The position numbers and the translations under genes are program-made. Under the pieces are notes generated by a model. It was not told the origin of the DNA. It saw only the letters and a program-made list of their open reading frames with translations, and ran no database searches. Shown in pieces: positions 3,061-48,999 of a stretch of DNA of 64,000 nt. Position 1 is the first letter of the stretch, and the number at the start of each line of letters is the position of its first letter. This stretch comes from Mobula hypostoma (Eukaryota): the NCBI RefSeq assembly GCF_963921235.1, contig NC_086126.1, forward strand, positions 16,120,001 to 16,184,000, given 5' to 3'.

Positions 3061-3130
3061 CAGGTATTCCAAAGGCTGAAATAAAAGGATAGTAAATGTC
3101 TTCTATCCGCCAGATGACTGGATACACCAT
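3061..3130 (-). CDS. GPR139-like GPCR paralog C, coding exon 1 (MVYPVIWRIEDIYYPFISAFGIP+G); exon 2 predicted left of the window
   Basis: 70-nt exon from ATG to CCT G|GTAAGT donor. 21 of 23 aa are identical to exon 1 of the complete gene at 48930-48999. Not in the ORF track. Confidence 0.85.
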
Positions 3131-3216
3131 TTCAGTGAGAATCTGTGATTTCTGTTGCTCCTGATTTCACTGCTCCGGCAGACACTCTGAGCTGATGCTT
3201 TCTGAAATAGCCCAGA

Positions 3217-3222
3217 TTTATA
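3217..3222 (-). promoter_or_regulatory. TATA box (TATAAA) of GPCR paralog C
   Basis: TATAAA about 87 bp upstream of the ATG, at a similar position in all three paralogs. Confidence 0.55.
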
Positions 3223-3799
3223 CAGAGGATCAGTCTCCAGAGATAAGTCACCACACTGACTTTCTTAGTTGCAGTTGATTGAAAAAACACTTTAATTGAA
3301 CACCATTGCCTTTGATAAATGTTGGGTTGGTTAAAGAAAAACACATCAAGTGTCTTTGGTATTACCTGAGAAAAATAAGGCCGGTAGCTTTACTTACAAA
3401 GACTGAGCAGATACATTTAAATATTTTATATTTTTGTTGGCTAATTATTCATCTCTCAACGCAGACGAGCGTTGTCATTGCAATTCTGTTCAACAATGCT
3501 TGAATCGTCGAACATGCTTTTTTATCATTATACTCTTTTTTTAATTGAAAACAAGCGCTCTCTCCTACAGGTGCTGATCAATTATACCATTGTTAGTAAC
3601 AGCTGTACAAATATGATGAAGCGAATTCAATGTGGGTGAAATATGGTACGAGACTTCCAAGGAGGTCTCAATTTAGTCGTCGCCTTGTCTTTCCAATGAC
3701 TTTGTGCTTCCGGCGATAACATCAGTTAGGGAAATTTTAAAAGGACAAAATGATTGCATGCTAGAATACCTCATGATTTCAACTGCCCCAATGAAATTG

Positions 3800-4025
3800 G
3801 GTCGCTTTTGAATAACCGTGTTTAGCTATGGTCACTACATCGCCGGAAGATGTAATTAGTCTGGAGATGGGTGCAAAGTTTATCACATAGAAATTCGCTG
3901 GACTAGCAAGCTTGTGTTACAGGGCAAGAATGGATGAAAGGAACCGATTTCTCGGTGGTTAGCAGGCTGAGGGGAGACCTGAGAGAATTTTATAAAACAT
4001 AAGAGATACGTATGGGTTAGAGAAT
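3800..4025 (+). mobile_element. Old CR1 RT 3' fragment
   Basis: gaagatgtaattagtctggag...aggctgaggggagacctgagaga resembles the CR1 RT C-terminus (RLRGDL.E). Confidence 0.6.
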
Positions 4026-4126
4026 CGCAAACAACAGGAATTCTGCAGATGCTGGAAATTCAAGCAACATACATCAAAGTTGCTGGTGAACGCAACAGGC
4101 CAAGCAGCATCTGTAGGAAGAGGTGC

Positions 4127-4162
4127 AGTCGACGTTTCAGGCCGAGACCCTTCGTCAGGACT
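4127..4162 (-). ncRNA. Minimal type I hammerhead ribozyme motif (intact core)
   Basis: Minus strand AGTC-CTGACGA-AGGGTCTCGGCCT-GAAAC-GTC-GACT: CUGANGA and GAAA boxes, GUC cleavage triplet, AGTC/GACT stem I, palindromic ACGT stem III. Confidence 0.7.
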
Positions 4163-4425
4163 AACTGAAGGAAGAGTGAGCAAGGGAAATCCCTGATCCA
4201 GAGCAACCACAGGAACGGTGAGCAGCCAGATGAGGGAGAATGGGAGAGAGGATGAGGGAGCAGTGGGTGAGAGGAGAAGGGGCGGGAGAGGATGAGAAGG
4301 AGAGAGTGAGATGGAGATGAAGAGAAACGATGTTCAAGAATGGAAATATATGAAATTAACTACCAACACACAGAAAAGTTGCTGGTAAACACAGCAGGCC
4401 AGGCAGCATCTATAGGAAGAGGTAC

Positions 4426-4461
4426 AGTCGAAGTTTCGGGCCGAGCGCCTTCGTGAGGACT
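4426..4461 (-). ncRNA. Hammerhead motif with mutated core (likely inactive)
   Basis: AGTC-CTCACGA-AGGCGCTCGGCCC-GAAAC-TTC-GACT; substitutions in the CUGA box and stem III. Confidence 0.5.
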
Positions 4462-12561: not shown

Positions 12562-14545
12562 TATAGAAGCATAGAAACATTGAAAACTTACAGCACCATA
12601 CAGGCCCTCCGACACACAGAGCTGTGAGGAACATGTACCCACATTACACCTACACTTGCTTCACCCGTAGCCGTCTACTTTTCAAAGTTCCATGTAGCCA
12701 TCCAGGTGTCTCTTAAGAAACCCTATCGTTTCCGCTTCCACCGCCACCACCAGCAGCCCATTCCGCGCACTCACCACACTGGGCGTAAAAAAAAACAAAC
12801 TCCCGCAGACATCTCCTCTGTACCTACTTCCAAGCACCTTGAAACTATGCCCTCTCATGCTAGCCATTTCAGCTCTGGGGTAAAGCCTCTGACTATCCAC
12901 AGGACCAATGCCTCTGATTATCCTGAACACCTCCATCAGGTCACCTGTCACCCTCCGTCGCTCCAAGGAGAAAAGCGCGAGTTCACTAAACCTATTCTCA
13001 TAAAGCATGCTCCTCAATACAGTCAACGTCATTGCAAATCTCCTCTGTACCCTTTATATGATTTCCACGTCTTTCCTGTAGTGAGACATCCAGAACTGAG
13101 CACAGTACTCCAAGTGGAGTCTGACCAGCTTCCTATATAGCTGCAACATTACCTCTCGGCTCTTAAAGTCAAACTCACGATTGATGAAGTCCAATAAACA
13201 CTAAGCCTTCTTAACCACAGAGATAACCTTTGTAACAGCTTTGAGTGTCCTCTGGACTCGGAGCCCAGGTTCCCTATTATCCTCCACAAAGCCAAGAGTC
13301 TTATCATTAATGCTATATTCCTCCATTATATTTGAACTACCAAAATGAACCACCCCACCCTTATCTGGGTTAAGTTCCATCGGCCACTTCTCAGCCCAGT
13401 TTTAATTCCTAGCAATGTCCCACTGTAACCTCTGACAGCCCTCCACACTACCCACCACACCTGCAACCTTCGTGTCATCAGCAAATCTAACTAGCCCATT
13501 CCTCAATTTCCTCATCGAGGTCATTTATAAAATCAGAAAGAGTAGGGGTCCCAGAACATATCTGAGGCACACCACTGGTCACCAACCTCCATGCAGCATA
13601 TGAACCGTCTACAACCACTGTTTGCCTTCTGTTGGCAAGCCAGTTCTGGATCCACAAAGCAATGTCCCTTTGGATTCCATGCCTCCCTACTTTCTCAATA
13701 AGCCTTGCATGGGGTGTTTTATGAAATGCCTTGCTGAAATCCATATAAGCTACATCCATGGAGCTACCTTCATCAATGTGTTTAGTCACATTCTCAAAAA
13801 ATTCAATCAGGCACATAAGGCACGATGTGCCTTTCACAAAGCCACGCTGACTATTCCTAATCATATTATGCCTCTCCAAATGTTCATAAATTCTGTCTTT
13901 CTGGATCTTTTCCATCAGCTTAATTAAGATTCACTGGTTAATTTCCTGGGCTATCTCTATTCCCTTGGCTGAATCAGGGAACAACATCCCCAACCCTCCA
14001 ATCCTCCGGAACCTCTCACCTTCTCATTGACGATGCAAAGATCTTCGCCAGAGGCTCAGCAATCTCCCCCATCGCTTCCCACAGTAGCCTGGGGTACATA
14101 GCGTCCGGTCCCAGTGACTTCTCCAGCTTGATGCCTTCCAAAAGCTCCAACACATCCTCGTCCTTAATATATGTATGATTAAGCTTTTTCAGTCCTCTGC
14201 ACGTCATCCGTACATTCGCCAATATCTTTTCCGTAGTTAATACTGAAGCAAAGTATTCATTAATTAGCTCTTCTATCTTCTCCGGTTCCATACACATTTC
14301 CACTGTCCAATGTGATTGGTGCTATCTTTTGACGTCTTATCCTCTTGCTCTTCACATATTTGTAGAATGCCTTAAGATTTTCTTTTAACCTGTTCACCAA
14401 GGCCTTCTCGCGACCCCTTCTGGGTCTCCTTATTTCATTATTAAGCTCATTCCTGTTAGTTTATAATCTTCTAGATCTCTATCATTATCCAGATTTTTGA
14501 AGCTTCCAAAAGCCCGTCCTTTCTTCTTGTCCAGATTTACAACTT
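12562..14545 (-). mobile_element. Degenerate CR1 LINE, 3' half with tail
   Basis: Tail atagaagcatagaaac at 12562; ORFs 12682-13032, 13487-13915 (SQRGFVKGTSCL...YMDFSKAFHK...GVPQ) and 14016-14303 (KSLGPDAMYPRLL). Confidence 0.92.
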
Positions 14546-16299
14546 GATGCTTTCCAAAAGCTCCAGTACATCCCTAATATCTATATGCTCAAGCTTTTTA
14601 GTCGCCTGCAAGTCGTCCCTACAATCGCCAAGATCCTTTTCCGTAGTGAATACTGAAGACTTACCCTATTGCAGTTCACATTCTTGTAGATAGCCTTGGG
14701 GTTTTCCTTCATCCTGTCCGCCAAGGCCTTCGCATGGCACCTTCTGGCTCTCCTAATTTTATTCTTAAGCTCCTTCCTGCCAGCCTTATAGAAACATAGA
14801 AAATAGGTGCAGGAGTAGGCCATTCGGCCCTTCGAGCCTGCACCGCCATTTATTATGATCATGGCTGATCATCCAACTCAGAACCCAGCCTTCCCTCCAT
14901 ACCCCCTGACCCCTGTAGCCACAAGGGCCATATCTAACTTCCTTTTAAACATAGCTAATGAACTGGCCTCAACAGTTTGCTGTGGCAGAGAATTCCACAG
15001 ATTCACCACTCTCTGTGTGAAGAAGTTTTTCCTAACCTCGGTCCTAAAAGGCTTCCCCTCTATCCTCAAACTGTGACCCCTCGTTCTAGACCTCCCCAAC
15101 ATCGGGAACAATCTTCCTGCATCTAGCCTGTCCAATCCCTTTAGGATCTTATACGTTTCAATCAGATCCCCCCTCAATCTTCTAAATTCCAACGAGTACA
15201 AGCCCAGTTCATCCAGTCTTTCTTCATATGAAAGACCTGCCATCCCAGGAATCAATCTGGTGAACCTTCTTTGTACTCCCTCTATGGCAAAGATGTCTTT
15301 CCTCAGATTAGGGGACCAAAACTGCACACAATACTCCAGGTGTGGTCTCACCAAGGCCTTGTACAACTGCAGTAGTACCTCCCTGCTCCTGTACTCGAAT
15401 CCTCTCGCTATAAATGCCAGCATACCGTTCGCCTTTTTCACCGCCTGCTGTACCTGCATGCCCACTTTCAATGACTGGTGTATAATGACACCCAGGTCTC
15501 GTTGCACCTCCCCTTTTCCTAATCGGCCACCATTCAGATAATAATCTGTTTTCCTATTTTTGCCACCAAAGTGGATAACTTCACATTTATCCACATTAAA
15601 TTGCATCTGCCATGAGTTTGCCCACTCACCCAACCTATCCAAGTCACCCTGCATCCTCTTAGCATCCTCCTCACTGCTAACACTGCCACCCAGCTTCGTG
15701 TCATCCGCAAACTTGGAGATGCTGCATTTAATTCCCTCATCCAAGTCATTAATATATATTGTAAACAACTGGGGTCCCAGCACTGAGCCTTGCGGTACCC
15801 CACTAGTCACCGCCTGCCATTCTGAAAAGGTCCCGTTTATTCCCACTCTTTGCTTCCTGTCTGCTAACCAATTCTCCACCCACACCAATACCTTACCCCC
15901 AATACCGTGTGCTTTAAGTTTGCACACTAATCTCCTATGTGGGTCTTCTAGTCTTCTAGATTCATATCATTACCTAATTTTTTTGAACTGTTCGTAAGCT
16001 CTTCTTTTCTTCTTGACTAGATTTACAACCACCTTTGTACACGACGGTTCCTGTACCCTACCATCATTTCCTTATCTCATTGGAACGTACAATGCAGAAC
16101 CGCACGCAAATATCCCCTAAACATTTGCTACATATCTTCCCTACGTTTCCCTGAGAACATCTGTTTCCAGTTTATGCTTCCCTACCTTATCTGTTCATAA
16201 CCCTCTTCAAAGCTAAGGTAAAGGGGATAGAGTTGTGATGAGTTCCACTGAACGATATGGCACATGACCAGGTTCATTTCCCAATACCAGATCAAGTAC
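14546..16299 (-). mobile_element. Second CR1 segment (linker/endonuclease end), split by a younger CR1 and cut at its right end by a Gypsy LTR
   Basis: 14546-14788 repeats sequence already seen at about 14125-14460. The host sequence resumes at 15943 (tcttctag) and runs to gatcaagtac at 16299. Confidence 0.75.
14789..15942 (-). mobile_element. Young 5'-truncated CR1 copy with uninterrupted RT C-terminal ORF (14878-15927, 349 aa)
   Basis: GVPQGSVLGPQLF, KFADDTKL, RPHLEYCVQFWSP with no stops; 3' tail atagaaacatagaaaatagg. Same family as 38960-42237. Confidence 0.95.
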
Positions 16300-16673
16300 T
16301 GTTGCAAGGACGAGGCTGAGAACGAACCCAAGTGCACCCAGGAGCACGGAGGTAAATTCATGAGGCGTTAGCACCGCCGCGAACGGGGAACCGGTATCCA
16401 GGACAGTCTTTTCACGGATACCAGGTTTACATAGAGCATCCAGGAAATGATGAGGAGATTAGAACTGACAGTCCCATGAAATCAGAAAACGAGGTTTACT
16501 CACACTAGAGTCGACCAACGAACTGGCAAAGCATGGCTGTGCCACCCGCGTTTTATCCAATGTTCGTTAATGTGCTGCAATTTGTGGAACTCGGAATGAT
16601 TGGAAATCAGACGAGGGGATGAAGGCCTATTTAAGGATGTAATAGCAAGATGGGAAATTGCCAGACCATGACA
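16300..16673 (-). repeat. Gypsy 3' LTR (374 bp) with adjacent polypurine tract at about 16678-16698
   Basis: Minus strand TGTCATGGTCTGG...TTGCAACA termini; G-rich PPT immediately upstream; AGTAAA poly(A)-like signal near 16495-16500. Confidence 0.8.
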
Positions 16674-19600
16674 ATACAACCCCCCCTCCACCGCCCCCAC
16701 CACAACAGGATCCTCCAGGGTTGTCCGGATGGTCCCGATAGAAGTCTTGGATGAGTGAGTGGACCAGGAAGTAGGAGCAGGGAACGCAGGAACGCTCCTC
16801 TGGGCCGTACCCTTCACAGTCGACCAGGTATTGGAGGACCCTGCCCCGACGGCGCACATCTGGTAGCCGCCGGATGGTGTATGCCGGGTGGTTGTTGATG
16901 AGCCGGGCGGCTGGAGGGGTTTCGGTCGGAGGACACAAGGGGCTGAAGGAAAGTGGTTTAAATTGGGAAAGATGAAAAGTAGGGTGGATGTGCATAGATC
17001 TTGGCAGTTTAAGTCGGACTGCTGTGGGGTTGATGATACTTTCGACCTTGAAAGTTCCCAGGAAGCGAGGGGCGAGTTTCTTAGGCTTGTCTTTGCGAGG
17101 GATGTCAAACCATCTGCGCAAGTCGATACTCAGGCGAAGCAGTCCATTGTCGATTGGCAATTCTCCTATTGCGATAGGCTGATCTGAGCAGGGCCGTGCG
17201 TGAGACCTCCCAAAACTTGCGGCACCGATGGATATGGGCCTGAACAGACGGCACTGAAATATCCTCTTTTTGCGCGGGGAACAGCGGAGGTTGGTACCCA
17301 AGGGAGCGCTCGAATGGAGGCATTCCGATGGTAGTACGAACCAGAGAGTTGTGTGCGTACTCAAGCCACGCGAGATGGTCACTCGAAGTAGCCGGATTGT
17401 TGCTTGTAATACAACGTGGCATCGCCTTCAAGTCCTGGTTGACCTGATCCGTTTGCCGGTTCGTCTGTGGGTGAAAGCCGGGTGACAGGCTAACGGAGGC
17501 ACACCAGGGTTGACAGAAGGCCTTCCATACCTGCGAGATGAATCGGGGACCTCGATCGGAGACGTTGAGGCGGAAGTCGTGGCGGACGAGAAGGCCTGCG
17601 GTTTCTTGAGCAGAAGGGTGTTTCGGGAAGGCTACAAAGTGCACCGTGTTGGAGAACCGGTCTACCACAGTGAGTACGTTAGTATTTCTGTGTGAAGGGG
17701 GTGGACCGGTGACAAAATCGAGGGCAATGTGCGACTAAGGACAACAAGGGACAGGTAGGGGACGAAAGAAACACGCAGGTGGCCGATGGGAGGCTTTTCC
17801 ACGGGCACAGATGGAACATGCAGAGACACAGGAACGGGTATCCGCTTCCATGGAAGGACACCAAAGTTTTTTTTTCAGGAGAGCCAGGGTTCAATCACTC
17901 CCGGGGTGGCAGGCGAAGCGAGATGTGTGCCCCCACCGAAGAAACTGAAGTCTGACGGAATCAGGCGCAAAAAGGCGATCGGCTGGTCCATTGCCGGGGT
18001 CAGGGTCATCCCGTTGGGCTTCCTTTGCTATGGACTGAATCTCCTCAGTGAAGGTTGCCACCACACAGGATAGTGGGAGGATAGTCTCTGGGCAGGAAAT
18101 GTCCTCCTTGGAGTTATATTGGCGGGCGAGTGCGTCCGTCTTCCGATTCTTGGACCCTGTACGGCATGTAACGTTAAACTTGAACCGTCCAAAAAGTAAT
18201 GCCCAACGGATATGGCGGAAGTTCAAACGTTTGGCAGTCTGCATATATCCCAGGATCTTATGATCAGTCCAAACAATAAACGGGTGTTCCGTCCCTTCCA
18301 ACCACTGCCTCCACTCCTCCACTGCTAGCTCGACCGCCAGTAGTTCCCGGTTCCCCACGTCGTAATTGCGCTCGGCAGGGGACAGTCGGCGAGAAAAGAA
18401 GGGACAGGATTGCTCCTATCCCAGATTCGGAGGCGTCAACCTCAACAATGAAATGAGGTCAGGGGTCCGGTGGACCAGGATGCGAGCGGTTGTGAACCGC
18501 CTCTTCAGGTCAGTGTATGCCGAATCAGCCTCGGAATCCCAATAAAATGGTGCGGTAGACGAGTTAAGCCGGGTGAAGGGCGCCGCCACCCTTCTGTAAT
18601 ACCTGATAAATCGGCGAGAAAAGTTTGCAAACCCCAAAGGCCGCTGAAGTTGCTTGCGTCTGATGGGTCTGGGCTACTCTTCCACCGCTCGGATCTTCTC
18701 GGGATCTGCACTCACCTGCCCGCTCTCGATGATGTATCCCAGGAATCTGACCAAAAGGACGTGGAACTCACATTTCTCCGCCTTCACAAATAAGTTGTTC
18801 TCCCACAGTCCCTGGAGGATTAGACGGACATGCTGAATGTGTTTCTGGGGGCTGCTAGAATATATTATGATATCATCTAGGTAGACGAACACGAAACGAT
18901 TAATGAAGACCCCTCATTACATCATAGATTGGGGCTTGAAAAACGGCGGGTGCATTGGTGTGGCCAAACGTCATGACCAAGTATTCGAGGTGGCCCAAAC
19001 GTGTATTGAAGGCCGTCTTCCACTCGTCTCCCTCTCTCATACTGACCAGGTAGTAGGCGCTCCATATGTCCATCTTCGAGAGGATGGTGTCTCCGTGAAG
19101 TGGTGGAAATGCCGAGACATTGAGGGGTCGTGGGTACTTATTTTAACCGTTATGTTTTTTAGACCTCGGTAATCAGTACAGGGACGAAAAGACCCAACCT
19201 TCTTATTTACAAAGAAGAACCCGGCGACCACCGGGGAGGATGAAGGTCGAATAATGCCCGCGGAAGAGTCTCACTAGCCACTGTATTTCTCCATGGCCAC
19301 TCTCTGCGGTCCGGATAAATTACAAAGACGACTGGTGGGTAACGAGGCCCCGGGGAGACGGTCGATAGCGCAATCATACGGGCGGTACGGAGGCAGTGAG
19401 AGAACCCGTTGTTTGCTGAATACCTGTCCCAGGTCATGGTATTCTGCGGGGACTCCGGACAAGTCGAGAGGTTCCAATACGGGCGGGGTCCCGATAGCCT
19501 CCCTAGGGGATGGAGCCGACCGCAGACAGGTGGTTTGGCTAAACGGGCTATTCTCCCGGTAGACCAGTCGAGGTAGAGGTTGTGGTGGTTCAACCAGGGA

Positions 19601-25190: not shown

Positions 25191-25269
25191 CTGAAATAAA
25201 TTATTGAAGATAAATCATTATCAGTTATCGCAGAATGATTAGTGTGACTGTACTTCTCTAGTCTGAGTT

Positions 25270-26485
25270 GTAATCGATCGGATTAATGAAGGAAGAGCAG
25301 TAGATGTAGTGTATATGGATTTCAGCAAGGCAGTTGATAAGGTAACCCATGCAAGGCTTATTGAGAAAGTAAGGAGGCATGGGATCCAAGGGGACATTGC
25401 TTTGTGGATGCAGAACTGGCTTGCCAACAGAAGGCAAAGAGTGATTGTAGACGGGTCATATTCTGCATGGAGGTCGGTCACCAGTGGTGTGCCTCAGGGA
25501 TCTGTTCTGGGACAGTTACTCTTCGCGATTTTTATAAATGTCCTGGATCAGGAGGTGGGGGGATGGGTTAGTAAGTTTGCTGGTGACACAAATGTTGGAG
25601 GTGTTGTGGATAGTGTGGAGGGCTGTCAGAGGTTACAGTGCGACATTGATAGGATGCAAAACTGGGCTGAGAACTGGGTGATGGAGGTCGAGATAAGTGT
25701 GCAGTGGTTCATTTTGGTAGGTCAAATTTGATGGCAGAGTATAGTATTAATGGTAAGAGTCTTGGCAGTGTGGAGGATCAGAGGGATCTTTGAGTCCGAG
25801 ACCATAGGACGCTCAAAGCAGCTGCGCAGGTTGACTCTGTGGTTAAGAAAGCGTACGATATTTTGGCCTTCATCAATCGTGGAACTGAATTTAGGAACTG
25901 GGGAGGTAATGCTACAGCTATATAGGACCCTGATCAGACCCCACCTGGGGTACTGTGCTCAGTTCTGGTCACCTCACTGCAGGAAGGATGTGAAAACCAT
26001 AGAAAGGGAGCAGAGGAGATTTACAAGGACTTTGCCTGGATTGAGGAGCATGCTGTATGAGAATAGGTAGAGTGAACTCGGCCTGTTCTCCTTGGAACGA
26101 CAGAAAATGAAAGGTGACCTGATAGAGGTGTATAAGATGATGAGAGGCATTGATCGTATGGGTAGTCAGTGGCTTTCTCCCAGGACTGAAATGGTTGCCA
26201 CAAACGGACACAGGTTAAGGTGCTGGGGAGTAAGTACAGAGGAGATATCAGGGGTAAGTTTTTAACTCAGTAAGCGGTGAATGCGTAGAATGGGCTGCCG
26301 TCAACGGTGGTGGAGGCGGATACGATGGGGTATTTTGAGAGACTTTTGGATAGGTATATGGAGCTCAGAAAAATAGAGGGTTATGGGTATGCCTAGTAAT
26401 TTCTAAGGTAGGGACATGTTCGACACAACTTTGTGGGCCGAAGGTCCTGTATTGTTCTGCAAGTTTTCTGTGTTTCTATGTTCAC
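25270..26485 (+). mobile_element. 5'-truncated CR1 in the intron of GPCR A (antisense to the gene)
   Basis: YMDFSKAVDKV...GVPQGSVLG...KFAGDT; RPHLGYCAQFWSP; tail tttctgtgtttctatgttc. Confidence 0.92.
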
Positions 26486-27674
26486 TATGGGCCGTTATCT
26501 GGTGTCAGGATAACAGTCCATTTACACTAACTGAGAGGGAATGCGGTTGACCAGATCAAACTCCTCTCGTTACGATGTACAAATCAGATCTCACCAATTT
26601 CCCATCCAGCTGTTAAACATCAGACGGAACGGAGAAACGGCAGCAACCGCCGGTTTGATGACAAACCTATCCTTGCTGGGAGAAACAGGTAGATAATGCA
26701 CAGGCAATCTACTCCCTCAAAATCATATTTCCTTTGTATGACTGCATTTTCACTGCTATCGGGGAAGACTCATGAGAAAGTGTCATCAAATGGCAGATAC
26801 CAAAGTAAATCGTCTGAAATATTCAGGACCGAGGTGCATCGGAAGGTTGTCCAAATTTTATGTAATTTAAGTACAATTGTCAAACGGCGTGAAATGGTAC
26901 CACCATTTATTTCTTACACTGAATAGCACTGCAGTGCTTATGTATTAATTCTCAACTAAAACTTAAAGCACGTGGACGGTATAGAGACAATCTATTGTTA
27001 ATTCCGTCAGTCTCTACTGACAGCAGAGCAAGAATCTGGTTAACGTGGAGAGAGATTTGAACAGAGGATAATACTTGGGACTTAAACACTAACTGCAACG
27101 CGTCAGGTTTCCTGGTCCAAAAAGTAAACATTGAATGTATTATGAGTTGAAGTATGCTGGGTCTGCTGGCGGCCAGAGACAGATCGAACGGTTCAGAGCT
27201 GACCCAGCGGTGAGCGGGCATGGTGAGCACTTGCAATCAGGATGTTACGGGAAGTAGTATCTTTACAACCTGCTCTAATGAAGTCCTCGTGTAGGGTCCT
27301 TTTCAAAGATGCTGCCTGACCTGCTGAGTTCCACGAACATTGTTTGTATGGTATTTTCATGTCTGCGTCTTTTTAAAGCGTGTTTAAATATTTTTGGCAC
27401 GCAATTAGGTCAACAATATTACAACCTGGTAATGTATGCTTGTGTTAAAATCATAGTAATATATACATAAATATATCAAACACCTCAATCATATACACAT
27501 GTAAAATTAAACCAGTAAACTTACACGAATTACAATTAGAATATATATTAGCAGCGCAAGATTATTTTCTTTGTCTAATTACACAAAAACATGCACTGGA
27601 CCGCATATTTCCTTTGGTTGTCAAGTACAGTTTATCTACGATGCCCCGAGCGAAGTACAAAGACATCAGATTAC

Positions 27675-27814: not shown

Positions 27815-27821
27815 TTTTATA
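27815..27821 (-). promoter_or_regulatory. TATA box (TATAAAA) of GPCR A
   Basis: About 72 bp upstream of the ATG; same placement as in paralogs B and C. Confidence 0.55.
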
Positions 27822-28299
27822 CCACTCGGAACCACGATTAAATCAGTTCGTGCTACCATTGGTGCAATTAGAAGGAATTCATTGAACAAACACGAAGTGT
27901 TAACCATTTTTACTCATTGTGTCATTGTCGATATATTTAGCTCTTCAATGTTAATTATAAGTGCATTGATTTTATGTTCCTTCGAAATATATTCAGTGGA
28001 GACAGTCCGTGCAGTTCTGTTTCGCAACGTTTGACTTGCGAAACAGAAAACATTTTATCATTATATGCTTTATTTTTTTTTTCTGGAACACCAGCGGAAT
28101 GTGCATTTACCGATCAATTATAACATTGTCAGTATCAGGTTTGTCAAAGATGAAGTGAGTTCAATATGTGTAAAATGTGCGATGAGACTTCCTTGGAGGG
28201 GACAGTTTTGTCGCTGTCTTGTCTTTCCACTGCTGTTAGTGCTTTGGGCGACAGCTGTCGCCAGTTAATATTTCAAAGTGCAATTTGGCTGCGTGTCCA

Positions 28300-32549: not shown

Positions 32550-33440
32550 TTCTATCTATCTCTCTCTCCCGCTCTGTCTCTCCCACTCCCTCTCCCTCTA
32601 TCCCTCTCCCTCTCTCTCTGTCGCTCTTTCTGTCTCTGTCTCTCTCCCCCTCTCTCTCCCCCCTGTCTCTTCCACTCCCTCTCCCTCTATCCCTCTCCCT
32701 CGCTCTCTGCCGTTGTCTCTGTCTCTGTCTCTCTCTCCCTCTCTCTCTCCCCCCGTCTCTCCCACTCCCTCTCCCTCTATCCCTCTCCCCCTCTCTCTNN
32801 NNNNNNNNNNNNNNNNNNNNNNNNNNNNNNNNNNNNNNNNNNNNNNNNNNNNNNNNNNNNNNNNNNNNNNNNNNNNNNNNNNNNNNNNNNNNNNNNNNNN
32901 NNNNNNNNNNNNNNNNNNNNNNNNNNNNNNNNNNNNNNNNNNNNNNNCCCTCTCTCTCTATCCCGCTCCCTCTCTCTCTGTCGCTGTCTCTGTCTCTGTC
33001 TCTCTCTCCCTCTCTGTCTTTCTATCTCCCTCTTCCTCACGATGTCTTATTCTCTTCACTATCTCGCTCTCTCTCTCATTGTTTTCTCTGCCTCTCCCAC
33101 AGGCCTACTCCCTCGCACTCACTCTTGCGTCATCTTTCTCGTGTCCAATCCGTCGCGCTGTCCCCCTCACGTGCTCTCCTTCGCGCCCTCTCCATCACGC
33201 CAACTCCCTCGAGCCCTCTCTCCTTCTCGCGATGTCTCCTTCTGTCGCTCTCCCTCGCGCTCACCATCGCCATCACGCTCTCCCTCACGCCCTGTAGATC
33301 ACGCTCACTCTAGCGGCATCTCCATGGCACCCCCTCCCTCACGTGCACTCCTGCGCGCCCTTTACTCGCGATGTCTCATTCGCTCTCTCCCTCGCGCTGT
33401 CTGCTGCGCGCGCTCACTTTCCCAATCTCTCTATCTCTCA
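32550..33440. repeat. CT-rich low-complexity/microsatellite tract spanning an assembly gap (N 32799-32947)
   Basis: Direct inspection. Confidence 0.9.
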
Positions 33441-35571: not shown

Positions 35572-36177
35572 TGTCGTACTGGACCAACCGATGCAAAGAC
35601 AAAGTACCACAAAAACACTAACACACGTAATTCTTTCTCAAACCTTTATTCTTTACTCATAGCCTGTTATGGGGGAAGTTACAGACTGGTCTCGCAAAAG
35701 AGCCAGTGCAGACACGGCCCCCGAATTACACAGTTCTCCACAATTTATAACATGGGTCAGGTAGCAGGAAATCTTACGAATACAGGTTTAGACAGTATTA
35801 GAATCATTTCAATCACATGCTAAGATGCAATTAGATGTAAAATAATGATTGGTCGGTTAATTGTAATTATTTTACGCCAAAGCTAGCCCATCAATTCCTC
35901 ATTCGGACCCTTCCCCTTTTCTCCGGAGCATTCTAGCCCCTACACTATACTTCCCATATTTAGCTATACCTTGAGCTGCTTCGGCAAGATCAGATAGCTC
36001 CATATTTGAGCCTTTGCCTATATTTAGACAATAATGACTAGTACGTCACCGGTTGTTGGATAAAGCTTCTTTCTGACTGTTCAAAACAGTAAGCTAAGGC
36101 GCCCACAAAGTTATTGATCATTAATTAATCATTGTTATTAGTCTACACCCATATTTACCTACCCCGTCACGCCATCA
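35572..36177 (-). repeat. ERV 3' LTR
   Basis: TGATGG...CGACA on the minus strand; roughly 88-90% identical by eye to 46025-46630; TATAAA near 35744-35749 and AATAAA at 35645-35650. Confidence 0.95.
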
Positions 36178-37509: not shown

Positions 37510-38959
37510 TCACTTAGGTGGATACAGTGGCTGTGCCCTCGAACTTTAACGGCCGTAGGGGTTTGCAGTAGTATCTGGAATGGTCCTTTTCCCCGGGGTC
37601 CAAGCTTGGAGCGCTCCCAATCCCTGATCAGTACCGAGTCTCCCATTTTCAACTCCGGCCACTCCGTTCCCTGACCTCCAGTCTCCTTAAAGGTATTCTG
37701 TACCTGGGAGTGAGAAACTTTAGAGAGGATGTTAGTTGACGAAAGTACTTCTGGAATTCGTCCCCCATGACATTTAGATCAATTTGGATGGGAGGCTGCA
37801 TGTCAGCGTCCCATTGGGTCCTTCAAGGGCGCCCATAAACACTTTGAGCTGCAGATACCCCTGTAGTGGAGTGTGGGGTAATTCCCATATGGTATAAAGG
37901 CAGCGGAAGGACCTTCAGCCAACTCAGTCCGGTTTCGGACATGAACTTAGACAGCTTGTTTATCAGGGTGCCGTTGGCCCGTTCCACTATTCCTGCAGCT
38001 TTCGGGTGGTAGGCGCAATGAAAATGCTGTTCGATGCGCAGCACCTCACACAGTTCTTTATTTGTATTTCCTAAAAGTGAGGGCCAGTGTCCGAACTTAT
38101 TTGTCTGGGCAATCCGAATCTCGGTATAATCTCTGTAAGCACCAACCTTACCACCGTAGAAGCTTTATTACTGGTGGTCGGAAAGGCTTCAATCCATCTA
38201 CTGAGCACATCTACAATTACTGAGCAATGCTTACAACAGTACAGGCGTGGTAGTTCGATAAAATCAAGCTGAATACATTCAAACGGGCCACTTGGCAAGG
38301 GGGATTTTCCTGGGGCACACTTTACTCCCTTTCCCGCCTTTGTCTTTTGCCAAATCGAGCATGCTTCTATTTTTGCTGCAGCAGCTCCCTCCAGCATGGG
38401 GTGCCCCCATGTGCGGAGCAAAATATTACTCATTCCCCCCTTGCCAAAGTTGGTGTCCGTATGCAAGCAATCGAGCAACATAGGCAGCAATGCATTAGGA
38501 ATACAAACTTGCCAACCGCGGTATGCCAGAGGCCCGTGGACACCGATGCACACATCCGTGCGTCTTCCAAAGTTGTTTTTCTGAATCAGGGGCGTCCCCC
38601 TGGAGTTTTTGAACTGTAGCCCTTTCTGGAGTGCCCGGCGCTCGGAGTGTTTTAGTCAGGGTGGAGGTCAATTGTTCTGCAGTAAAGATTATAACGGTCA
38701 ACTCCTGCGCAGTCTGCTTGGCAGCCAAATCGGTCCAGTTATTTCATTTATCACTGCAGATTCGTCTTTTCGATGAGCCGAATATTTAATAATGGCGATT
38801 TTTTTCGGGGAGGTGTATGGCCTGAAGGAGGTTCCCTACATACATGGCATTCTGGATGGGGGTCCCGGAGGAGGTGAGGAAAAGGTTCCGTTGCAGACAG
38901 TCATGAGGAGGCTCAGTCAACTCAGCAAGTGCCGTCTCTAAAAATGTAGCAGGGTTGAT
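37510..38959 (-). pseudogene. pol: ERV pol 3' part (connection, partly deleted RNase H, integrase)
   Basis: INPATFL...PHDC joined directly to FLTSSGTPIQN; integrase DDE motifs in ORFs 38071-38553 and 37823-38044. Confidence 0.88.
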
Positions 38960-41900
38960 ACAGAAACATAGAAAATAGGTGCAGGAGTAGGTCATTCGGC
39001 CCTTCGAGCCTGCACCATCATTCAGTACGATCATGGCTGATTATCCAACTCAGAACCCTGAACCTGCCTTCTCTCCATCCTCCCTGATCCCTTTAGCCAC
39101 AAGGGTCATATCTAACTCCCTCTTAAATACAGACAATGAACTGGCCTCAACTGTTTCCTGTGGCAGAGGATACCACAGATTCACTACTCTCTGTGTGAAG
39201 AAGTTTTTCCTCATCTCGGTCCTGAAACGCTTCCCCTTTATCCTCAAACTGTGACCCCTCGTTCTGGACTTCCCGAACATCAGGAACAATCTTCCTGCAT
39301 CTAACCTGTCCAATCCCTTTCGAATTTTATACGTTTAAATCAGATGCCCCCTCAATTTTCTAAATTCCAGCAAGTATAAGCCTAGTTCATCCAGTCTTTC
39401 ATCATTTGAAAGTCCTGCCATCCCAGGAATCAATATGGTGAACCTTCTTTGTAGTACCTATATGGCAAGGATGTCTTTCTTCAGATTAGGGGACCGAAAC
39501 TGCACTCAATACTCCAGGTGTGGTCTCACCAAGCCCTTGTACAACTGCAGTAGTACCTCTCTGCTCCTGTACTGGAATCCTCTTGCTATGAATGACAGCA
39601 TACCATTCGCCTTTTTCACCGCCTGCTGTACCTGCATGCCCACTTTCAATGACTGGTGTACAATGAAACCCAGGTCTCGTTGCACCTGCCCTTTTCCGAA
39701 TCGGCCACCATTCCGATAATAATCTGTTTTCCTGTTTTTGCCACCAAAATGGATAACCTCACATTTATCCACATTAAATTGCATCTACCATGAATTTGCC
39801 CACTCACCTAACGTATCCAAGTCACCCTGCATCCTCTTAGCATCCTCCTCACAGCTAACACTGCCGCCCAGCTTCGTGTCATCCGCAAACTTGGAGATGC
39901 TGCATTTAATTCCCTCGTCTAAGTTATTAATATATATTGTAAACAACTGGGGTCCTGGCGCTGAGCCTTGCGGTACCGCAGTAGTTACTGCCTGCCATTC
40001 TGAAAAGGCCCCGTTTATTCACACTCTTTGCTTACTATCTGCCAACAAGTTGTTTATCCATATCAATACCATACCTTCAATACCGTGTGCATTACGTGTT
40101 CACACTAATCTCCTGTGTGGGGCCTTGTCAAAAGCCTTTTGAAAATCCAAATATACCTCATTCACTGGTTCTCCCCATCCACTCTACTAGTTACATCTTC
40201 AAAAAATTCTATGAGCTTCATCAGACATGATTTTCCTTTAACAAATCCATGCTGACTTTGTCCGATAATTTCACCGCTTTCCAAATGTGCTGTTATCACA
40301 TCTTTGATAACTGACTCTAGCATTTTCCCGACCACCGATGTTAGGCTAACTGGTCTATAATTCCCCGGTTTCTCTCTCCCTCCTTTTTTAAAAAGCACGG
40401 TTACATTAGCCACCCTCCAATCCTCAGGAACTAGTCCAGAATCTAAAGAGTTTTGAAAAAAAAATTATCACTAATGCATTCACTATTTCTTGGGCTACTT
40501 CCTTAAGCACTCTGGGATGCAGACCATCTGGCCCTGGGGATTTTTCTGCCTTTAATCCCGTCAATTTACCTAACACCACCTCCCTACTAACATATATTTC
40601 CCTCAGTTCCTCCAACTCACTAGACCCTCGGTCCCCTACTATTTCTGGAAGATTATTTATGTTCTCCTTAGTGAAGACAGAACCAAAGTAGTTATTCAAA
40701 TGATCTGCCATGTCCTTGTTCCTCATGATCAATTCACATGTTCTGACTGTAAGGGACCTACATTTGTCTTAACCAATCCTTTTCTTTTCACATATCTATA
40801 AAAGATTTTACATTCAGTTTTTATGTTCCCTGCCAGCTTTCTCTCATAATTTTTTTCCCTTTCCTAATTAAGCTCTTTGTCCTCCTGTGCTGGACTCTGA
40901 ATTTCTCCCAGTCCTCAGGTGTGCCGCTTTTTCTGGCTAATTTGTATGTTTCTTCTTTGGAAATGATACTATCCCTAATTTCCCTTGTCAGCCACGGGTG
41001 TACTACCTTCCCTTGTTTATGCTTTTGCCAAACCCGGTGAACAATTGTTGTAGTTCATCCATGCGACCTTTAAATACTTGCCACTGCATATCCACCGTCA
41101 ACCCTTTAAGTATCATTTGCCAGTCTGTCTTAGCTAATTCACGACTCATACCTTCAAAGTTACCCTTCTTTAAGTTCAGAACCTTTGTTACTGAATTAAC
41201 TATGTCATTCTCCATTTTAATGAAGAATTCCACCATATTATGGTCACTCTTACCGAAGGGGCCTCGCACTAACTCTAACTAACTCTTCCTCATTGCTCAA
41301 TACCCAGTCTAGAATGGCCTGCGAATATTCCTTGCATTGACACACAAATACTTCAGGCTTGCGTTTACAAGACTCTTAGCCCTTAAACAATTATGTTGAA
41401 AAGTGGCCCATTTTGATTTTTGCCCTGGATTTGCAGGCCTGCCACTTTTACTTTTCACCGTACTAGTTTTTGCTTCTAACCTCAGTTTACAGCCCCCTGT
41501 CTCTCTACTCTTGTTCCTATCCCCTGCCACATTAGTTTAACTCCTCCTGAACAACAGTAGCAAATGCTCCCCCTAGGACATTGGTTCCAGTCCAGCCCTG
41601 GTGCAAACCGTCCTGGTTGTACCGGTCCCTCCTCCTCCAGAACTGGTTCCATCGCCCCAGAAATTTGAATCCCTCTCCTTTGCACCAATTTTCAAGCCAT
41701 GTATTCATCTGAAATATCCTCCTATTTCTACTCTGACTAGCACGTGGCACTGGCAACAATCCAGAGATTATTACCTTTGTCGTCCTACTTTTTAGTTTAT
41801 CTCCTAACTCCTTAAATTCACCTTGTAGGACCTCATCCCGTTTTTTTTTCCTGTATCTGTGGTACCTATGTGCACCACGACCACTGGCTGTGCACCCTCC

Positions 41901-42237
41901 CACTCCAGAATGTCCTGTAGCCGCTCAGAGATATCCTTGCCCCTTGTACCAGGGAGGAATCATACCCTCCTGGAGTCTCGTTTGCCGCCGCAGAAACGCC
42001 TATCTATTCCCCTATCACTATGCCTCTCCCACTCCTTTTCCTTCCCTCCTGTGCCACAGAGCCACCCTTGGTGACGCGAACTCGACTGCTGCCTTCCCCT
42101 GATGAGCCATCTCCCCCAACAGTATCCAAAACAGTATATCTGTTTAGGAGGGATATGACCTCAGGGGACTCCTGCACTACCTGCTTTACTACTGCGCTGT
42201 TCACTGGCCTCCCATTCCCTTTCTACCTGTTTAGCCT
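38960..42237 (-). mobile_element. Long CR1 LINE inserted into ERV pol (ORF1 SGNH-esterase region, partly deleted endonuclease, RT, tail)
   Basis: KVIISGLLPVPRAS...DGLH (CR1 ORF1 esterase), KSDHNMVEF, NYRPVSLTSVVGKMLE; tail cagaaacatagaaaatagg at 38960. Confidence 0.93.
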
Positions 42238-43300
42238 GGTATCACCGTATGCAAAGGTGAGCAGTGGGTTACTAAGTGATGCTAATTTATAACGGCTTAG
42301 TCTGGCCTGAGTCAGATGTTCGGTTTGGTGGGTGGTCAGCAGCGCTACAATGCTGTGGGACGAATAGACTGTAACTGGCTGTGGGAGGGTGATGTTGGAA
42401 GCAGCCGTAACTAGGGAGTAAATGGCCGGGAGCATCTGCGAACAGCGGGGTGATCGCTTCGCTACGGGGTCTAACATTAGGGAATAATAGGCAATAGGCC
42501 TGCGTGTATCTCCATGAGTCTGAGTGAGAACTGCAGTGGCGCAATGATCTAAAACATTCACAGAAAGCTGGAACGGACGGTCATAGAGTGGGAGGCCGAG
42601 AGCAGGTGCCCTCGAGAGGGATTTCTTCAACTCCTCAAAAGCCTCTCCCCGTTGCTGAGTTAGCTCTAGGGGCCCCGTAAGCGAACGTGAAGCCAGAGAG
42701 CTAAATGCTTTGCATGCAGAGCGACATTGGGAATCCACTGTCTGCAAACGTTTACCAGCCCAAGGAAAGCACGCATGGCTTTCGGCGTGGATGGCAGGGA
42801 CGTCGCAAGGACTGGGGTCACCCTTTCTGGGGTGAGCTGCCTTTCGGTTGCACTCAAAAGGGTTCCCAGAAATCTCACTTGCCGTTGGGTTCTCTTTGCT
42901 TTTCGGGGAGGGATCACGTAACCCCACGAATGCAGAGCATTCAGAAGCGCATTGGTGTCCTGTAGGTTTGAGGTTTCTGACGGGCTTGCCAGTAGGAGGT
43001 CGTCTACGTACTGGAGCCCCCGAGAAATTGTAAACTGTAAATGTCTAAGCTGCCTATGTAATATCTGCGAGAAAATGATGGGGTAGTGCACGAACCCTTG
43101 GGGTAACCTAGTCTAAGTGCACTGCTGATCTTGAAAGGTAGATGCAAAAAGGTACTATGACTCGGGAGCAAGGGGAATTGCAAAAAAGAAAAAACGCATG
43201 CTGCAGATCGACTATGGTAATAACTTGGGAGACCGGTGGAATGTTGCTTAAAATCGTAGGGACCACCGGATGCACAGGCTGCACAATTTCATGCTTTACT
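42238..43300 (-). pseudogene. pol: ERV pol RT domain (N-terminus and protease deleted)
   Basis: VHPVVPTIL...IVDLQHAFF, LPQGFVHYP, LQYVDDLLL, LSRAPALGLP, RPIAYYSLMLDPVA. Confidence 0.9.
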
Positions 43301-45324: not shown

Positions 45325-45729
45325 CTTTAAAGCCAGGCTTTTACTCTTTGGAGAGAAGGAGGATGAGAGGGGACATGATAGAGGTGTACAAGATAATAAG
45401 AGGAATAGATAGAGTGGATAGCCAGCGCCTCTTCCCCAGGGGACCACTGCTGAAAATAAGAGGGCATGGCTTTGAGGTAAGGGGTGGGAAGTTCAAGGGG
45501 GATATTAGAGGAAGGTTTTTTACTCAGAGAGTGGTTGGTGCGTGGAATGCACTGCCTGAGTCAGTGGTGGAGGCAGATACACTAGTGAAGTTTAAGAGAC
45601 TACTAGACAGGTGTACGGAGGAATTTAAGGTGGGGGCTTATATGGGAGATAGGGTTTGAGGGTCGGCACAACATTGTGGGCCGAAAGGCCTGTACTGTGC
45701 TGTACTATTCTATGTTCTATGTTCTATGT
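45325..45729 (+). mobile_element. Short CR1 3' fragment inserted in the ERV leader
   Basis: ERRRMRGDMIEVYK...FFTQRVVGAWNALP; (ttctatg)3 tail. Confidence 0.92.
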
Positions 45730-46001
45730 ATCACAATACTTCGTCGGGGACTGTAACCCCTTACCTTACCTTATACTCCGTTGGGGACTCTAGCCTCTCT
45801 TTTAACCTGTGGTACTCGGACGATCTCAGCTCAGATTTCGGAAGGAGTCTGTCAGAGGATTACCCGCCAGACGAGGGGATCGTCAAAGTGGGCCATGAAT
45901 GAGAGAGGTCAAGGTAAATCTTACCTTGTGGGCCCACCTGTCTCAGGTCACCGCCATCGAGCCAACCGCTGGCACCGCCTCACGACAACCACGTTTTTGG
46001 A

Positions 46002-46021
46002 CTCCTGACTTTGGCTCGCCA
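46002..46021 (-). other. ERV primer-binding site, tRNA-Arg(ACG)-like
   Basis: TGGCGAGCCAaaGtCAGGAG, 3 nt after the 5' LTR, versus TGGCGAGCCAGCCAGGAG expected (from memory) for the vertebrate tRNA-Arg(ACG) 3' end. Confidence 0.75.
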
Positions 46022-46024
46022 AAT

Positions 46025-46630
46025 TGTCGTACTGGACCGACCGATGCAAAGACAAGGTATAAGAAAAACACTAACACGCGTAATTCTTTTTCAAACCTTT
46101 ATTCTTTACTCATAGCCTGCTATGGGGGAAGTTAGAGACTGATCGCCCAAAAGAGCCAGTCCAGACACTGCCCCCGAATTACACAATTCTCCACAATTTA
46201 TAACATTGATCAGGTAGCAGGAACTCTTACGATTACAAGTTTAGATAATATTAGAATCATTTTAATTGCATGCTAAGATACAATTAGATGTAAAATAATC
46301 ATTGGTCAGTTAGTTATAATTATTTTAAGCCAAAGCTAGCCCATCAGTTCCTCATTCAGACCCTTCCCCTTTTCTCCAGAACATTCTAGCCCCTACACTA
46401 TGCTTCCCATATTTAGCAATACCTTGAGCTGCTTCTGCAAGATCAGGTAGTTCTTTTCTTTAGCCTTTGCCTGTCTTTACAGAACAACGACTAGTACGTC
46501 ACCGGTTGTTGGGTAAAGCTTCTTTTGGACTGCCCAAAACAGTAAGTTAAGGCGCCCACAAGGTGATTGATCATTAATTCATCATTGTTCTGAGTCTATA
46601 CCCCAATTTACCTACCCCTTCACACCATCA
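46025..46630 (-). repeat. ERV 5' LTR
   Basis: Colinear with 35572-36177; AATAAA at 46098-46103. Confidence 0.95.
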
Positions 46631-46669
46631 GGAGCATGAGGGCAGTTGAATTGCAGTACTTTACAGCAT

Positions 46670-47577
46670 TTATTTCTCACGTTTCATGAGTTTAAAGATC
46701 CGATTCAGTGGGCATTTCACAGCATTCTGTAGTTCCTCTCGAAATTTGCTCTGAGTCAGTGCGTACACACAGGTATTGGTGCAGGAACTGAGAATCTGCA
46801 GCAATTCAGATGTGTGTCCTGTGATGTAACGGGGATCCGTGAGAGAATAAACAAAACTCCTTGAAATCCGTCTGTAGATATAAAATACCACGTATGTTCC
46901 CCACAACAATATGAAACTACCGGTTATGCTGAAGAGCAAAACGATGGATTTGCGTCGGTTCTCCATCTCCCGGTCCTTGTCATTCGCTCTACTGCTTTGT
47001 CCCCGGAGACCCCTGCGGGCTCGACTGGCCGCTAAAATCCGCCTGACAGTCAGAATATTGAACAGCAACATTAGAAAGAATGGGAAACATGGGGTTAAAA
47101 TGAGTTGAAACATCACAAATGCCGCCCATGAGGAAGAGTTTGTGAAGCTCGGTGTATAAACACAGCCCCAGGGAAAACCATCAATTATTTCTTCAGGTTC
47201 GTGTATAAAGCCCCAGGGAACAGTCTCCAAACAGGCCAGCACACTCACTGTCCCGATAACCACAGCCGCCGTTCTCTCGGTGCAATATTTTGTTCTCAAT
47301 TTCCCACAGCAAATAGCCACAAATCGATCGACGGTGAAAGCGGCAGTCAGCCAGACTGAGGCCGCAGTGCTCGCAGAAACCAACCATTGACCAAGTCTGC
47401 ACACAGGAGTGATTCGCAGGAATGATCGCGGAAAATAAATCTTAGAAGTCCACTTTAGTAGCGGTTCCGAGAAAACGACCAGGAGATCGGCCGCTGCCAT
47501 TCCCACCAGGTAACGAGTGATACATTTGGAGAGACCGCACTTTCCCCGGGACAGGATCACAATCGCCACCAAGTTCG
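46670..47577 (-). CDS. GPR139-like GPCR paralog B, exon 2 (with exon 1 at 48930-48999 gives 325 aa)
   Basis: Acceptor ctgtctcccttccag|CGAACTTG in phase 1; ANLVAIVILSRGKCGLSK, MAAADLL, FTVDRFVAICC, CTNTCVY; frame intact. Confidence 0.93.
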
Positions 47578-48929
47578 CTGGAAGGGAGACAGGGAACAGC
47601 AAGTCGAGAAAATACTGAGCAGAAGACAATGCAGCAATTTGTAATATCCTGTAATATTGTTGCATTTAGCGGTGGGAGGGTCTGGAGAGGGCGCAGAGCT
47701 GCCGGAGACAGAGAAGGAGTTTACACAGTAAAATAAATTCTTTGTGATCTGAACACGGATTCCTTACTGATGACCGAAATGTACAGTGTCAACGGAAAGT
47801 TAAAGCTGGGTAACTACCTCCTCAGAGTAAATACTGGAAGGGACATTTTCTACCGGCGCCTTCCGGGTCTCGTCAGGGTGAAATGAATAAATCCGGACGC
47901 TTATGGCGGGATTCTTCCATTAGACAATCATCAACTTCCATGGCGATTCCCGTCAGCGACAGAACAGCCGAAGGACGGAACAAAAACATGAAATGCAGGA
48001 AACGCTCATCCAGGGAAAACAGAATATGTGGAAAATCAGTTAAAGTAGCTTTCCTCAGAACTGTTCTCAGAGAGACCCCTGACACGAGGGTTAACTGGTT
48101 TCTCTTTCCATACAAGCTGCTTGGGGCTTAGTGTTACCAGCATTCCCTGAGTTTGTTTCCTATTCCAGCATTTACCACCTCACTGACTTTACAACAGAAC
48201 ATTGACTGATTCCAACAGATACAGCGCGGTCTGACACAACCTCACAGACAGACATGACGCCTCCCGCTGAATCCATCACAGGGAAACAGCGGAGCGGAAT
48301 TGAAACTCGGTGCCTTAGTCAGAAGTCTGTAACGGTGTGAGGTGCAGATGTAATATAAAACATTTCACAGTATTGACAAATATGAAGCACCACGTCGGTT
48401 GTGTTAATTGACTCAGCATCGACTTCATTGTGTCTTCTATCAACTGCTTTATATTCAGTGATATCGCAGACATTTACTAAAAATCCACATCAGTTTCGTG
48501 TTACAACACGGAACTCCTCACATTTGCTGAAGTGTTACTACAGTCGATGGCTTGATTGTTGCTCCTAAGTGGACAAACACATTCAAATAATCAATTTACA
48601 TAAGTTCCGCGGGGTGTATAAACACAATATTTGTAAATATAGTGCAGCTGCTACAAGACCAAAAGCAGAGAGCCGAACATCCCATAATTAATCACAAACC
48701 GCTGGAAGAACGCTGCCTGACCCGCCCAGTCCCACAGAAATTGGTCGATTCGCCGAATTCCTGCAGCGGTTTGTTTTTAGATAGTAATCCCAGCAACTAT
48801 CGTCCCGGTGTTTCCACTCCACTCCTGAAATGCGGAATACGGGGACTGGAAAGATACAGTTTAAACCGGCGCAGTATCAATCACACCAAACTTCAACATC
48901 CACCCAGGGCAGCTGACACTGCGGCTCAC

Positions 48930-48999
48930 CGGGAATTCCAAAGGCTGAAATGAAAGGATAGTAAACGTCTTCTATGCGCCGGATGACTGGATACACCAT
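48930..48999 (-). CDS. GPR139-like GPCR paralog B, coding exon 1 (MVYPVIRRIEDVYYPFISAFGIP+G)
   Basis: 70 nt ending CCC G|GTGAGC; splices in frame to 47577. Not in the ORF track. Confidence 0.9.

Follow-up and report, generated by a model that had tools for sequence, protein, structure and literature searches.

Receptor genes of the locus

The 64,000-nt stretch of the Mobula hypostoma genome analysed here (contig NC_086126.1, positions 16,120,001 to 16,184,000; hereafter the window, whose numbering is used throughout) carries three receptor genes within 46 kb, designated A, B and C, all on the minus strand. Genes A and B contain the only two complete seven-transmembrane (7TM) open reading frames (ORFs) of the window, and gene C is represented by its promoter, its first exon and the start of its intron (Table 1). 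We consider it probable that the window covers a section of a tandem array whose genes are intact, have promoters of their own and belong to a large, elasmobranch-expanded family of class A orphan G protein-coupled receptors (GPCRs).

A hidden Markov model (HMM) of exon 1, built from the canonical N-termini of the family, matched the window exactly three times, with the next-best candidate at an E-value of 1.3. Exon 1 measures 70 nt in every gene, and the intron that follows it is therefore in phase 1; in genes A and B it interrupts the first transmembrane helix (TM1) in the codon directly before N1.50. Splicing produces coding sequences of 945 nt (314 aa) for gene A and 978 nt (325 aa) for gene B, each with one stop codon, which is terminal. 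The first-pass annotation of this DNA had proposed three same-strand paralogs of a single architecture, consisting of a 70-nt exon 1 and a phase-1 intron within TM1. The exon length and intron phase were borne out by the exon-1 HMM and by inspection of the splice sites, and the common architecture holds for genes A and B and for all three first exons, but gene C lacks an exon 2 within the window. The exon-1 regions of genes C and B are about 70-73% identical over ~500-950 bp (2577-3471 versus 48441-49365 in a self-blastn comparison). DNA searches with exon 1 of genes B and C gave no match to that of gene A, which is too diverged and was found by the peptide HMM.

We could not detect a third exon 2 in the window, including positions 1-3060, by permissive tblastn and six-frame hmmsearch. 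Exon 2 of gene C must therefore sit beyond the window start, behind an intron of which more than 3 kb already lies in the window. The presence of a third full-length paralogue here was rejected because these searches returned two second exons only. We also rejected the long ORF opening at ATG 47665 as the true start of gene B, since it reads through the 3' end of the intron, with a polypyrimidine tract and an AG preceding the N1.50 codon. An origin of the copies by retroposition or transposon capture was discarded as well, because each copy retains its intron and a TATA promoter of its own.

Genes A and B encode class A (rhodopsin-like) GPCRs. The Pfam 7tm_1 model scored 82.8 bits for gene B and 57 bits for gene A, against a cutoff of 30.5. 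An AlphaFold2 model of gene B exon 2, which includes TM1 only in part, reached a mean predicted local distance difference test (pLDDT) score of 83.4 and a predicted TM-score (pTM) of 0.80, and contained the expected helices, helix 8 and a hairpin in the second extracellular loop (ECL2). All matches of this model in a Foldseek search of the PDB were class A receptors, with a TM-score of about 0.7; these neighbours were generic class A peptide receptors and GPR139 came no higher than rank 16, so that the fold search does not discriminate among them. The motifs listed in the first-pass annotation are all present in both A and B: IVILSRGKCGLSKCIT in the first intracellular loop (ICL1), DRxVAICCxKLxxxYCTERTAAVV in ICL2, DxExxxRRKSxxLLF late in ICL3, LTQxKFRxELQN in helix 8, and NTCxY in TM7. 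The very short N-terminus described there was likewise found, with only a few residues ahead of TM1.

At least 97% of 240 family members retain N1.50, D2.50, D3.49-R3.50, the cysteine pair formed by C3.25 and ECL2, P5.50, W6.48, N7.49 and Y7.53, a figure that rises to at least 98% for D2.50, the DR pair, W6.48, N7.49, Y7.53 and both disulfide cysteines. Other positions depart from the class A canon: 3.51 is F or C, and P7.50 is replaced by T in 231 of the 240 members. The replacement of NPxxY by NTCxY had been noted in the first-pass annotation; the motif itself is real, but it is not peculiar to these genes, as the loss of P7.50 also occurs in human GPR139 (NFFLY) and in the non-elasmobranch relatives described below. 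The proline of CWxP (P6.50) is Thr in gene B (~46900) and in 141/240 members, and Pro in gene A and 77 others; judging from the alignment, this TM6 kink residue is dispensable in much of the family. The A-type genes carry DRC instead of DRF, and the YYP motif conserved in exon 1 has one Y replaced by C in gene A. The cytoplasmic side holds five cysteines that occur in 81-97% of the 240 members (gene A, about 25150-25100 and 24930-24890; gene B, 47540-47520 and 47310-47280): ICL1 contributes two (KCGLSKC) and ICL2 three (ICCxKLxxKYC). The GPR139 sequence, when aligned, lacks most of these cysteines, which could form a palmitoylation or metal-binding cluster.

Table 1. Positions of gene features and assembly gaps in the window.
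Feature	Position	Strand	Description
Gene C intron start	1..3060	-	Runs off the window; first ~480 nt homologous to the gene B intron
Gene C donor	3060-3055	-	GTAAGT
Gene C exon 1	3130-3061	-	70 nt = 23 codons + 1 base; exon-1 HMM E 9e-12
Gene C TATA box	3217..3222	-	87-92 nt 5' of the ATG
Gene A exon 2	25190-24316	-	End of TM1 to stop; 291 codons + stop; Pfam 7tm_1 E 2.7e-15
Gene A intron	25191..27674	-	2484 nt; GT-AG; phase 1; acceptor ...TTTCAG
Gene A exon 1	27744-27675	-	70 nt; exon-1 HMM E 5.5e-11; GTAATC donor
Gene A TATA box	27815..27821	-	71-77 nt 5' of the ATG
Assembly gap 1	32799..32947		149 N; intergenic between A and B, within a CT-rich repeat
Gene B exon 2	47577-46670	-	End of TM1 to stop; Pfam 7tm_1 E 3.7e-23
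Gene B intron	47578..48929	-	1352 nt; GT-AG; phase 1; acceptor ...TTCCAG
Gene B exon 1	48999-48930	-	70 nt; exon-1 HMM E 1e-9; GTGAGC donor
Gene B TATA box	49079..49084	-	80-85 nt 5' of the ATG; aligns with the gene C TATA box
Assembly gap 2	49425..50010		586 N; 426 nt upstream of the gene B ATG

An elasmobranch receptor family related to GPR139

Searches at E<=1e-10 returned 2117 non-redundant relatives for gene B and 1606 for gene A, counted as database proteins over the about 20 species that the family spans, and all of the relatives listed (238/238) came from sharks or rays. When 1.84 billion representatives clustered at 50% identity were searched with a profile, 136 clusters were matched at E<=1e-30. 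The ten divergent full-length clusters that were looked up proved to be elasmobranch too, several of them with consecutive accessions on one contig; one UniProt entry among the divergent clusters may be from a chimaera. Runs of consecutive accessions on a single contig were seen in catshark and bamboo shark, and indicate tandem arrays in other species. The expanding family that the first-pass annotation had anticipated is thus found in cartilaginous fish, with more than 2,000 non-redundant proteins. The proteins closest to gene B (83% identity) are from Mobula and Hemitrygon, and those closest to gene A (77-81%) are from Mobula and Hypanus.

Among receptors of solved structure, GPR139 was the best sequence match for both genes (gene B, E 4e-8; gene A, E 6e-11). 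A family profile of 63 sequences also placed GPR139 first (8.7e-20, 74 bits), 21 bits ahead of the PrRP receptor (2.1e-13, 53 bits), and the alignment between the profile and GPR139 extends through exon 1 (YYP...G-x-P-x-N). The description of these receptors as GPR139-like is therefore supported. The elasmobranch family has in common with GPR139 (PDB 7VUG-7VUJ, 9M42) the G-x-P-x-N of TM1, a valine replacing W4.50, and an N-x-x-x-Y without P7.50. It differs in keeping the C3.25-ECL2 cysteine pair, where the aligned 3.25 residue of GPR139 is Asp, in having a much shorter N-terminus, and in its copy number, which is one for GPR139 as compared with hundreds in rays and sharks. GPR142 is the closest paralogue of GPR139 and likewise a receptor for aromatic amino acids, and would therefore be just as distantly related to the family. 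An assignment of the ray genes to GPR139 or GPR142 themselves did not stand, as their relatives in salamanders, coelacanth and teleosts group with them in a clade apart. Strict orthology to GPR139 was rejected on the identity of only about 25%, the E-values of 4e-8 and 6e-11, the separate clade, and an agonist pocket that is not kept.

The first matches outside elasmobranchs were found in salamanders, coelacanth, two teleosts, amphioxus and a caecilian, with few sequences per species sampled, and the three relatives tested (salamander, coelacanth and caecilian) are only remotely similar to human GPR139. In a maximum-likelihood tree (LG+G4; short search and long outgroup branches, so that deep nodes are provisional), the elasmobranch genes were monophyletic with a support of 99, and the salamander gene was their sister group, also with 99. 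Genes of the A type, to which gene A belongs, and of the B type, to which genes B and C belong, form separate clades, each of which holds both sharks and rays; the split between them therefore predates the shark-ray divergence, and the later bursts are lineage-specific. The family points to a third, non-mammalian branch of the GPR139 lineage with a history of its own.

The phase-1 intron, which follows G-I-P, lies at the identical position in a skate paralogue and in the relative from the teleost Odontesthes bonariensis, whose first exon measures 79 nt, and the Branchiostoma lanceolatum relative is intronless. The match between teleost and ray, together with the intronless amphioxus gene, indicates that the intron was gained, or retained, on the vertebrate side. 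The ancestor of the family would have been an old GPR139-related gene in which the coding sequence already began with a tiny exon and was interrupted within TM1 by the phase-1 intron.

GPR210A and GPR210B were described in 2019, in a survey of the GPCRs in Ensembl, as GPR139/142-related orphan clades of coelacanth, gar and fishes (PMC6504862). The non-elasmobranch relatives found here (Latimeria, Odontesthes and Engraulis) have the same taxonomic profile, and share with the ray genes the short N-terminus and the ICL1 motif. They are probably GPR210A/GPR210B genes. The elasmobranch family departs from these clades in that the survey reported neither elasmobranch members nor an expansion (PMC6504862), and in that the closest outgroup in our tree is the salamander gene.

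Automatic annotation gives the family misleading names. Most members are called "probable GPR139", and others appear as GPR15-like, GPR39-like, galanin receptor 2b-like, vasopressin V2 receptor-like, capa receptor-like or tachykinin-like receptor 86C. Many database models of the family carry spurious upstream exons or fused reverse-transcriptase domains, and most close relatives of gene A are annotated as 265-aa proteins without TM1, probably because the 70-nt exon was missed. A Logan contig that we fetched lacked exon 1, and other Logan-derived proteins begin in intron read-through or inside exon 2, so that these sequences look genomic rather than spliced. A full-text literature search found no paper on this elasmobranch expansion. 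The receptor class and the nearest relative are known, and the scale of the family, its taxonomic restriction and the diversification of its pocket appear to be undescribed.

Cytoplasmic face, ligand pocket and possible roles

With inner and outer positions set from the helices of the model and from anchor residues, genes A and B are 59.6% identical over 166 intracellular-side residues as compared with 24.4% over 135 extracellular-side residues (p = 8.5e-10, Fisher), in agreement with the conserved intracellular and divergent extracellular faces noted in the first-pass annotation. The asymmetry extends to the family, in which the entropy is 0.81 bits on the inner side and 1.58 bits on the outer side, and recent clades, too, have very low entropy on the inner side. 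Between gene B and its nearest relatives, differences occur at 9-12% of the inner positions and at 24-33% of the outer ones, two to three times more often on the outer half. Gene conversion was considered as a cause of the conserved inner face and rejected: 41-73% of the identical residues in the conserved loops use different codons, which argues for selection rather than recent gene conversion.

We then compared the entropy of a pocket set with that of the other outer helix positions, the set consisting of 28 positions from a generic class A list with approximate numbering. Pocket positions were the more variable in the whole family (2.13 versus 1.59 bits; p = 0.006), in the B-type genes (1.84 versus 1.14 bits; p = 0.005) and in a recent myliobatiform B clade (1.21 versus 0.57 bits; p = 0.005). 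The corresponding values in the A-type genes were 1.48 and 1.39 bits (p = 0.6). The proposal that the pocket diversifies while the signalling face is kept thus held for the face, for the family as a whole and for the B-type pocket, but not for the pocket of the A-type genes.

We infer from these alignments that the pattern reflects diversification of ligands. Ligands would bind in the transmembrane pocket beneath the very short N-terminus, where the ECL2 hairpin would be tied to TM3 through the C3.25-ECL2 disulfide and the lining of the pocket would vary from gene to gene. The signal would then pass through the nearly invariant cytoplasmic face, composed of ICL1 (SRGKCGLSKC), the DRF or DRC motif with the cysteine-rich ICL2, the start of TM6, NTxxY and helix 8, which presumably engages one common G protein. 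As to the ligands, we tentatively suggest, at somewhat less than even odds, that they may be many small and probably external molecules, in a chemosensory type of use.

Such a use would resemble that of the OR and TAAR families, which are likewise composed of many compact genes with their own promoters, arranged in tandem clusters and subject to lineage-specific bursts, and which combine a conserved G-protein face with hypervariable pocket positions. A conserved face together with diversification of the B-type pocket is how odorant-type families behave, and the chemosensory interpretation offered in the first-pass annotation is therefore reasonable. The elasmobranch family differs from the OR and TAAR families in that it has no specific homology to them and in that no O/E-like sites were seen at the three promoters of the window.

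Elasmobranchs are known for their acute chemical senses. Published surveys (e.g. PMC6368271) nevertheless report very few OR, TAAR and V1R genes in them and a V2R set of modest size. This chemoreceptor gap has an obvious candidate to fill it in a class A family of more than 2,000 non-redundant members, spread over about twenty species, with a conserved signalling face and hypervariable pockets. In the strongest form of this idea, sharks and rays would have in this family the large repertoire for odorants or tastants that they otherwise lack, expressed one receptor per cell in olfactory or other chemosensory epithelia and compensating for the tiny OR, TAAR and V1R sets; this seems doubtful to us on the present comparisons. 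If true, it would add to the chemoreceptor families of vertebrates one that derives from a GPR139-like ancestor; if the family is not chemosensory, it represents an unexplained burst of receptor evolution in another role.

Several observations count against the reading of the window as part of a cluster of diversifying receptors. Its basis is gene structure and sequence comparison, and the numbers of relatives count database proteins across species rather than gene copies in one genome. The pocket set is a generic class A list rather than one read from model coordinates. There is no pocket-specific excess of variability in the A-type genes, and gene A differs from its closest relatives nearly evenly inside and outside. 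The ratio of nonsynonymous to synonymous substitution rates between A and B (omega 0.09 inside and 0.31 outside) is uninformative, with dS saturated at about 3, and leaves room for relaxed constraint on the outer half. Finally, the coding region of the ray genes is split by an intron, which distinguishes them from the OR and TAAR genes, and a search for OR-style O/E promoter sites gave 30 matches in the window versus 26.5 expected and none at the three promoters, which is weak evidence in the same direction.

An unlikely alternative is that the family serves internal signalling and consists of neuropeptide, immune or somatosensory receptors that expanded in this lineage, in a way comparable to the chemokine receptors or the rodent Mrgprs, with variable pockets that would track co-expanded endogenous peptides or metabolites. 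The structural neighbours of the gene B model are opioid, somatostatin, neurotensin, galanin and C3a receptors, the sequence matches that come next after GPR139 are PrRP and chemokine receptors, and the ECL2 beta-hairpin is of the kind present in peptide receptors. GPR139 itself is a brain receptor that reportedly responds to both peptides and amino acids (PMC5218887). However, an N-terminus of a few residues offers little surface for large ligands, and the number of genes is far above that of known families of receptors for endogenous ligands. No co-expanded family of ligands came to light, no search having been directed at one.

It is very improbable that the genes are duplicated true sensors of the GPR139/GPR142 type, all copies of which detect L-Trp, L-Phe or related peptides. 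GPR139 is indeed the top match, and the TM1 G-x-P-x-N and the loss of P7.50 are held in common, but identity to GPR139 is about 25% and the family groups with non-mammalian genes in a clade of its own. Mutagenesis has shown F109, H187, W241 and N271 to be required by the agonists of GPR139, Trp and Phe among them (PMC5430874), and R244 is a modelled hydrogen-bond partner whose mutants were not surface-expressed (PMC5430874). At these sites, F109(3x33), H187(5x43), W241(6x48), R244(6x51) and N271(7x38), gene B has S, Q, W, Y and E and gene A has L, H, W, T and F. None of the 240 members keeps all five residues, 115 of them keep W only, and the sites are hypervariable. An aromatic amino-acid ligand, which kinship to GPR139 had suggested, therefore cannot be inferred.

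Equally remote is a largely non-functional expansion, spread passively in repeat-rich DNA with many copies decaying, perhaps including A, and a pattern left by old constraint: LINE and Ty3/gypsy remains fill the window and extend into the introns of genes A and C, truncation or an odd N-terminus is common among the annotated relatives, and gene A combines relatives nearly as divergent inside as outside with the substitution in YYP. Against this, the ORFs of A and B are complete, with canonical splice sites and a TATA box for each gene, D2.50, the DR pair, W6.48, N7.49, Y7.53 and both disulfide cysteines persist in at least 98% of the 240 members, inner-side entropy stays very low in recent clades, and the truncated models probably arise where annotators miss a 70-nt exon that lies kilobases upstream.

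Repeats, assembly gaps and non-coding elements

Assembly gap 1 lies 5 kb upstream of the gene A ATG and 13.7 kb downstream of the gene B stop, and the adjacency of A and B on one strand depends on the scaffold across it. Both of its flanks consist of the same imperfect CT-rich repeat, and the ORFs that cross it are translations of this repeat; no receptor exon touches the gap, and reading frame is therefore irrelevant there. That the repeat is the same on both sides is what one would expect of a repeat left unresolved in the assembly, and not of unrelated sequences joined together, although this falls short of proof. Gap 2 may conceal a distal promoter of gene B.

Retroelement debris is dense in the window (5-2092, 14878-18358, 25282-26480, 38071-40121, 42223-42927 and 60254-62691) and comprises pieces of LINE reverse transcriptase as well as fragments of Ty3/gypsy-type RNase H, integrase and SH3 domains, all of which look broken. 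The LINE-derived repeat at 5-2092 occupies the gene C intron, and its portion 5-1424 matches 13131-14541, among other positions, in the self-blastn comparison; the fragment at 25282-26480, a ~1.2-kb LINE remnant, lies in the gene A intron. Another pair of retroelement segments, 14787-15943 and 38959-40121, is 90% identical. A scan of the window with Rfam returned no matches.

On the minus strand, a ~200-bp non-coding element occurs 320-640 nt upstream of the ATGs of gene A (28060-28300) and gene C (3530-3770). Its two copies are 81% identical, above the identity of the exon 1 and 5' untranslated region (UTR) of these genes, and the equivalent site upstream of gene B falls inside gap 2. The element could be a shared regulatory element or a fragment of a repeat; a regulatory role throughout the family is not proposed, since it is absent upstream of the skate paralogue. 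A 606-bp segment is present twice, at 35572-36177 and 46025-46630, with 89% identity. One copy starts 40 nt past the gene B stop, and no coding homology was found beside the other; the segment is either a repeat in the gene B 3' UTR or the remnant of the 3' end of a lost paralogue. A tandem array at 34257-34786 consists of 14.8 copies of a 36-nt unit with 79% matches.

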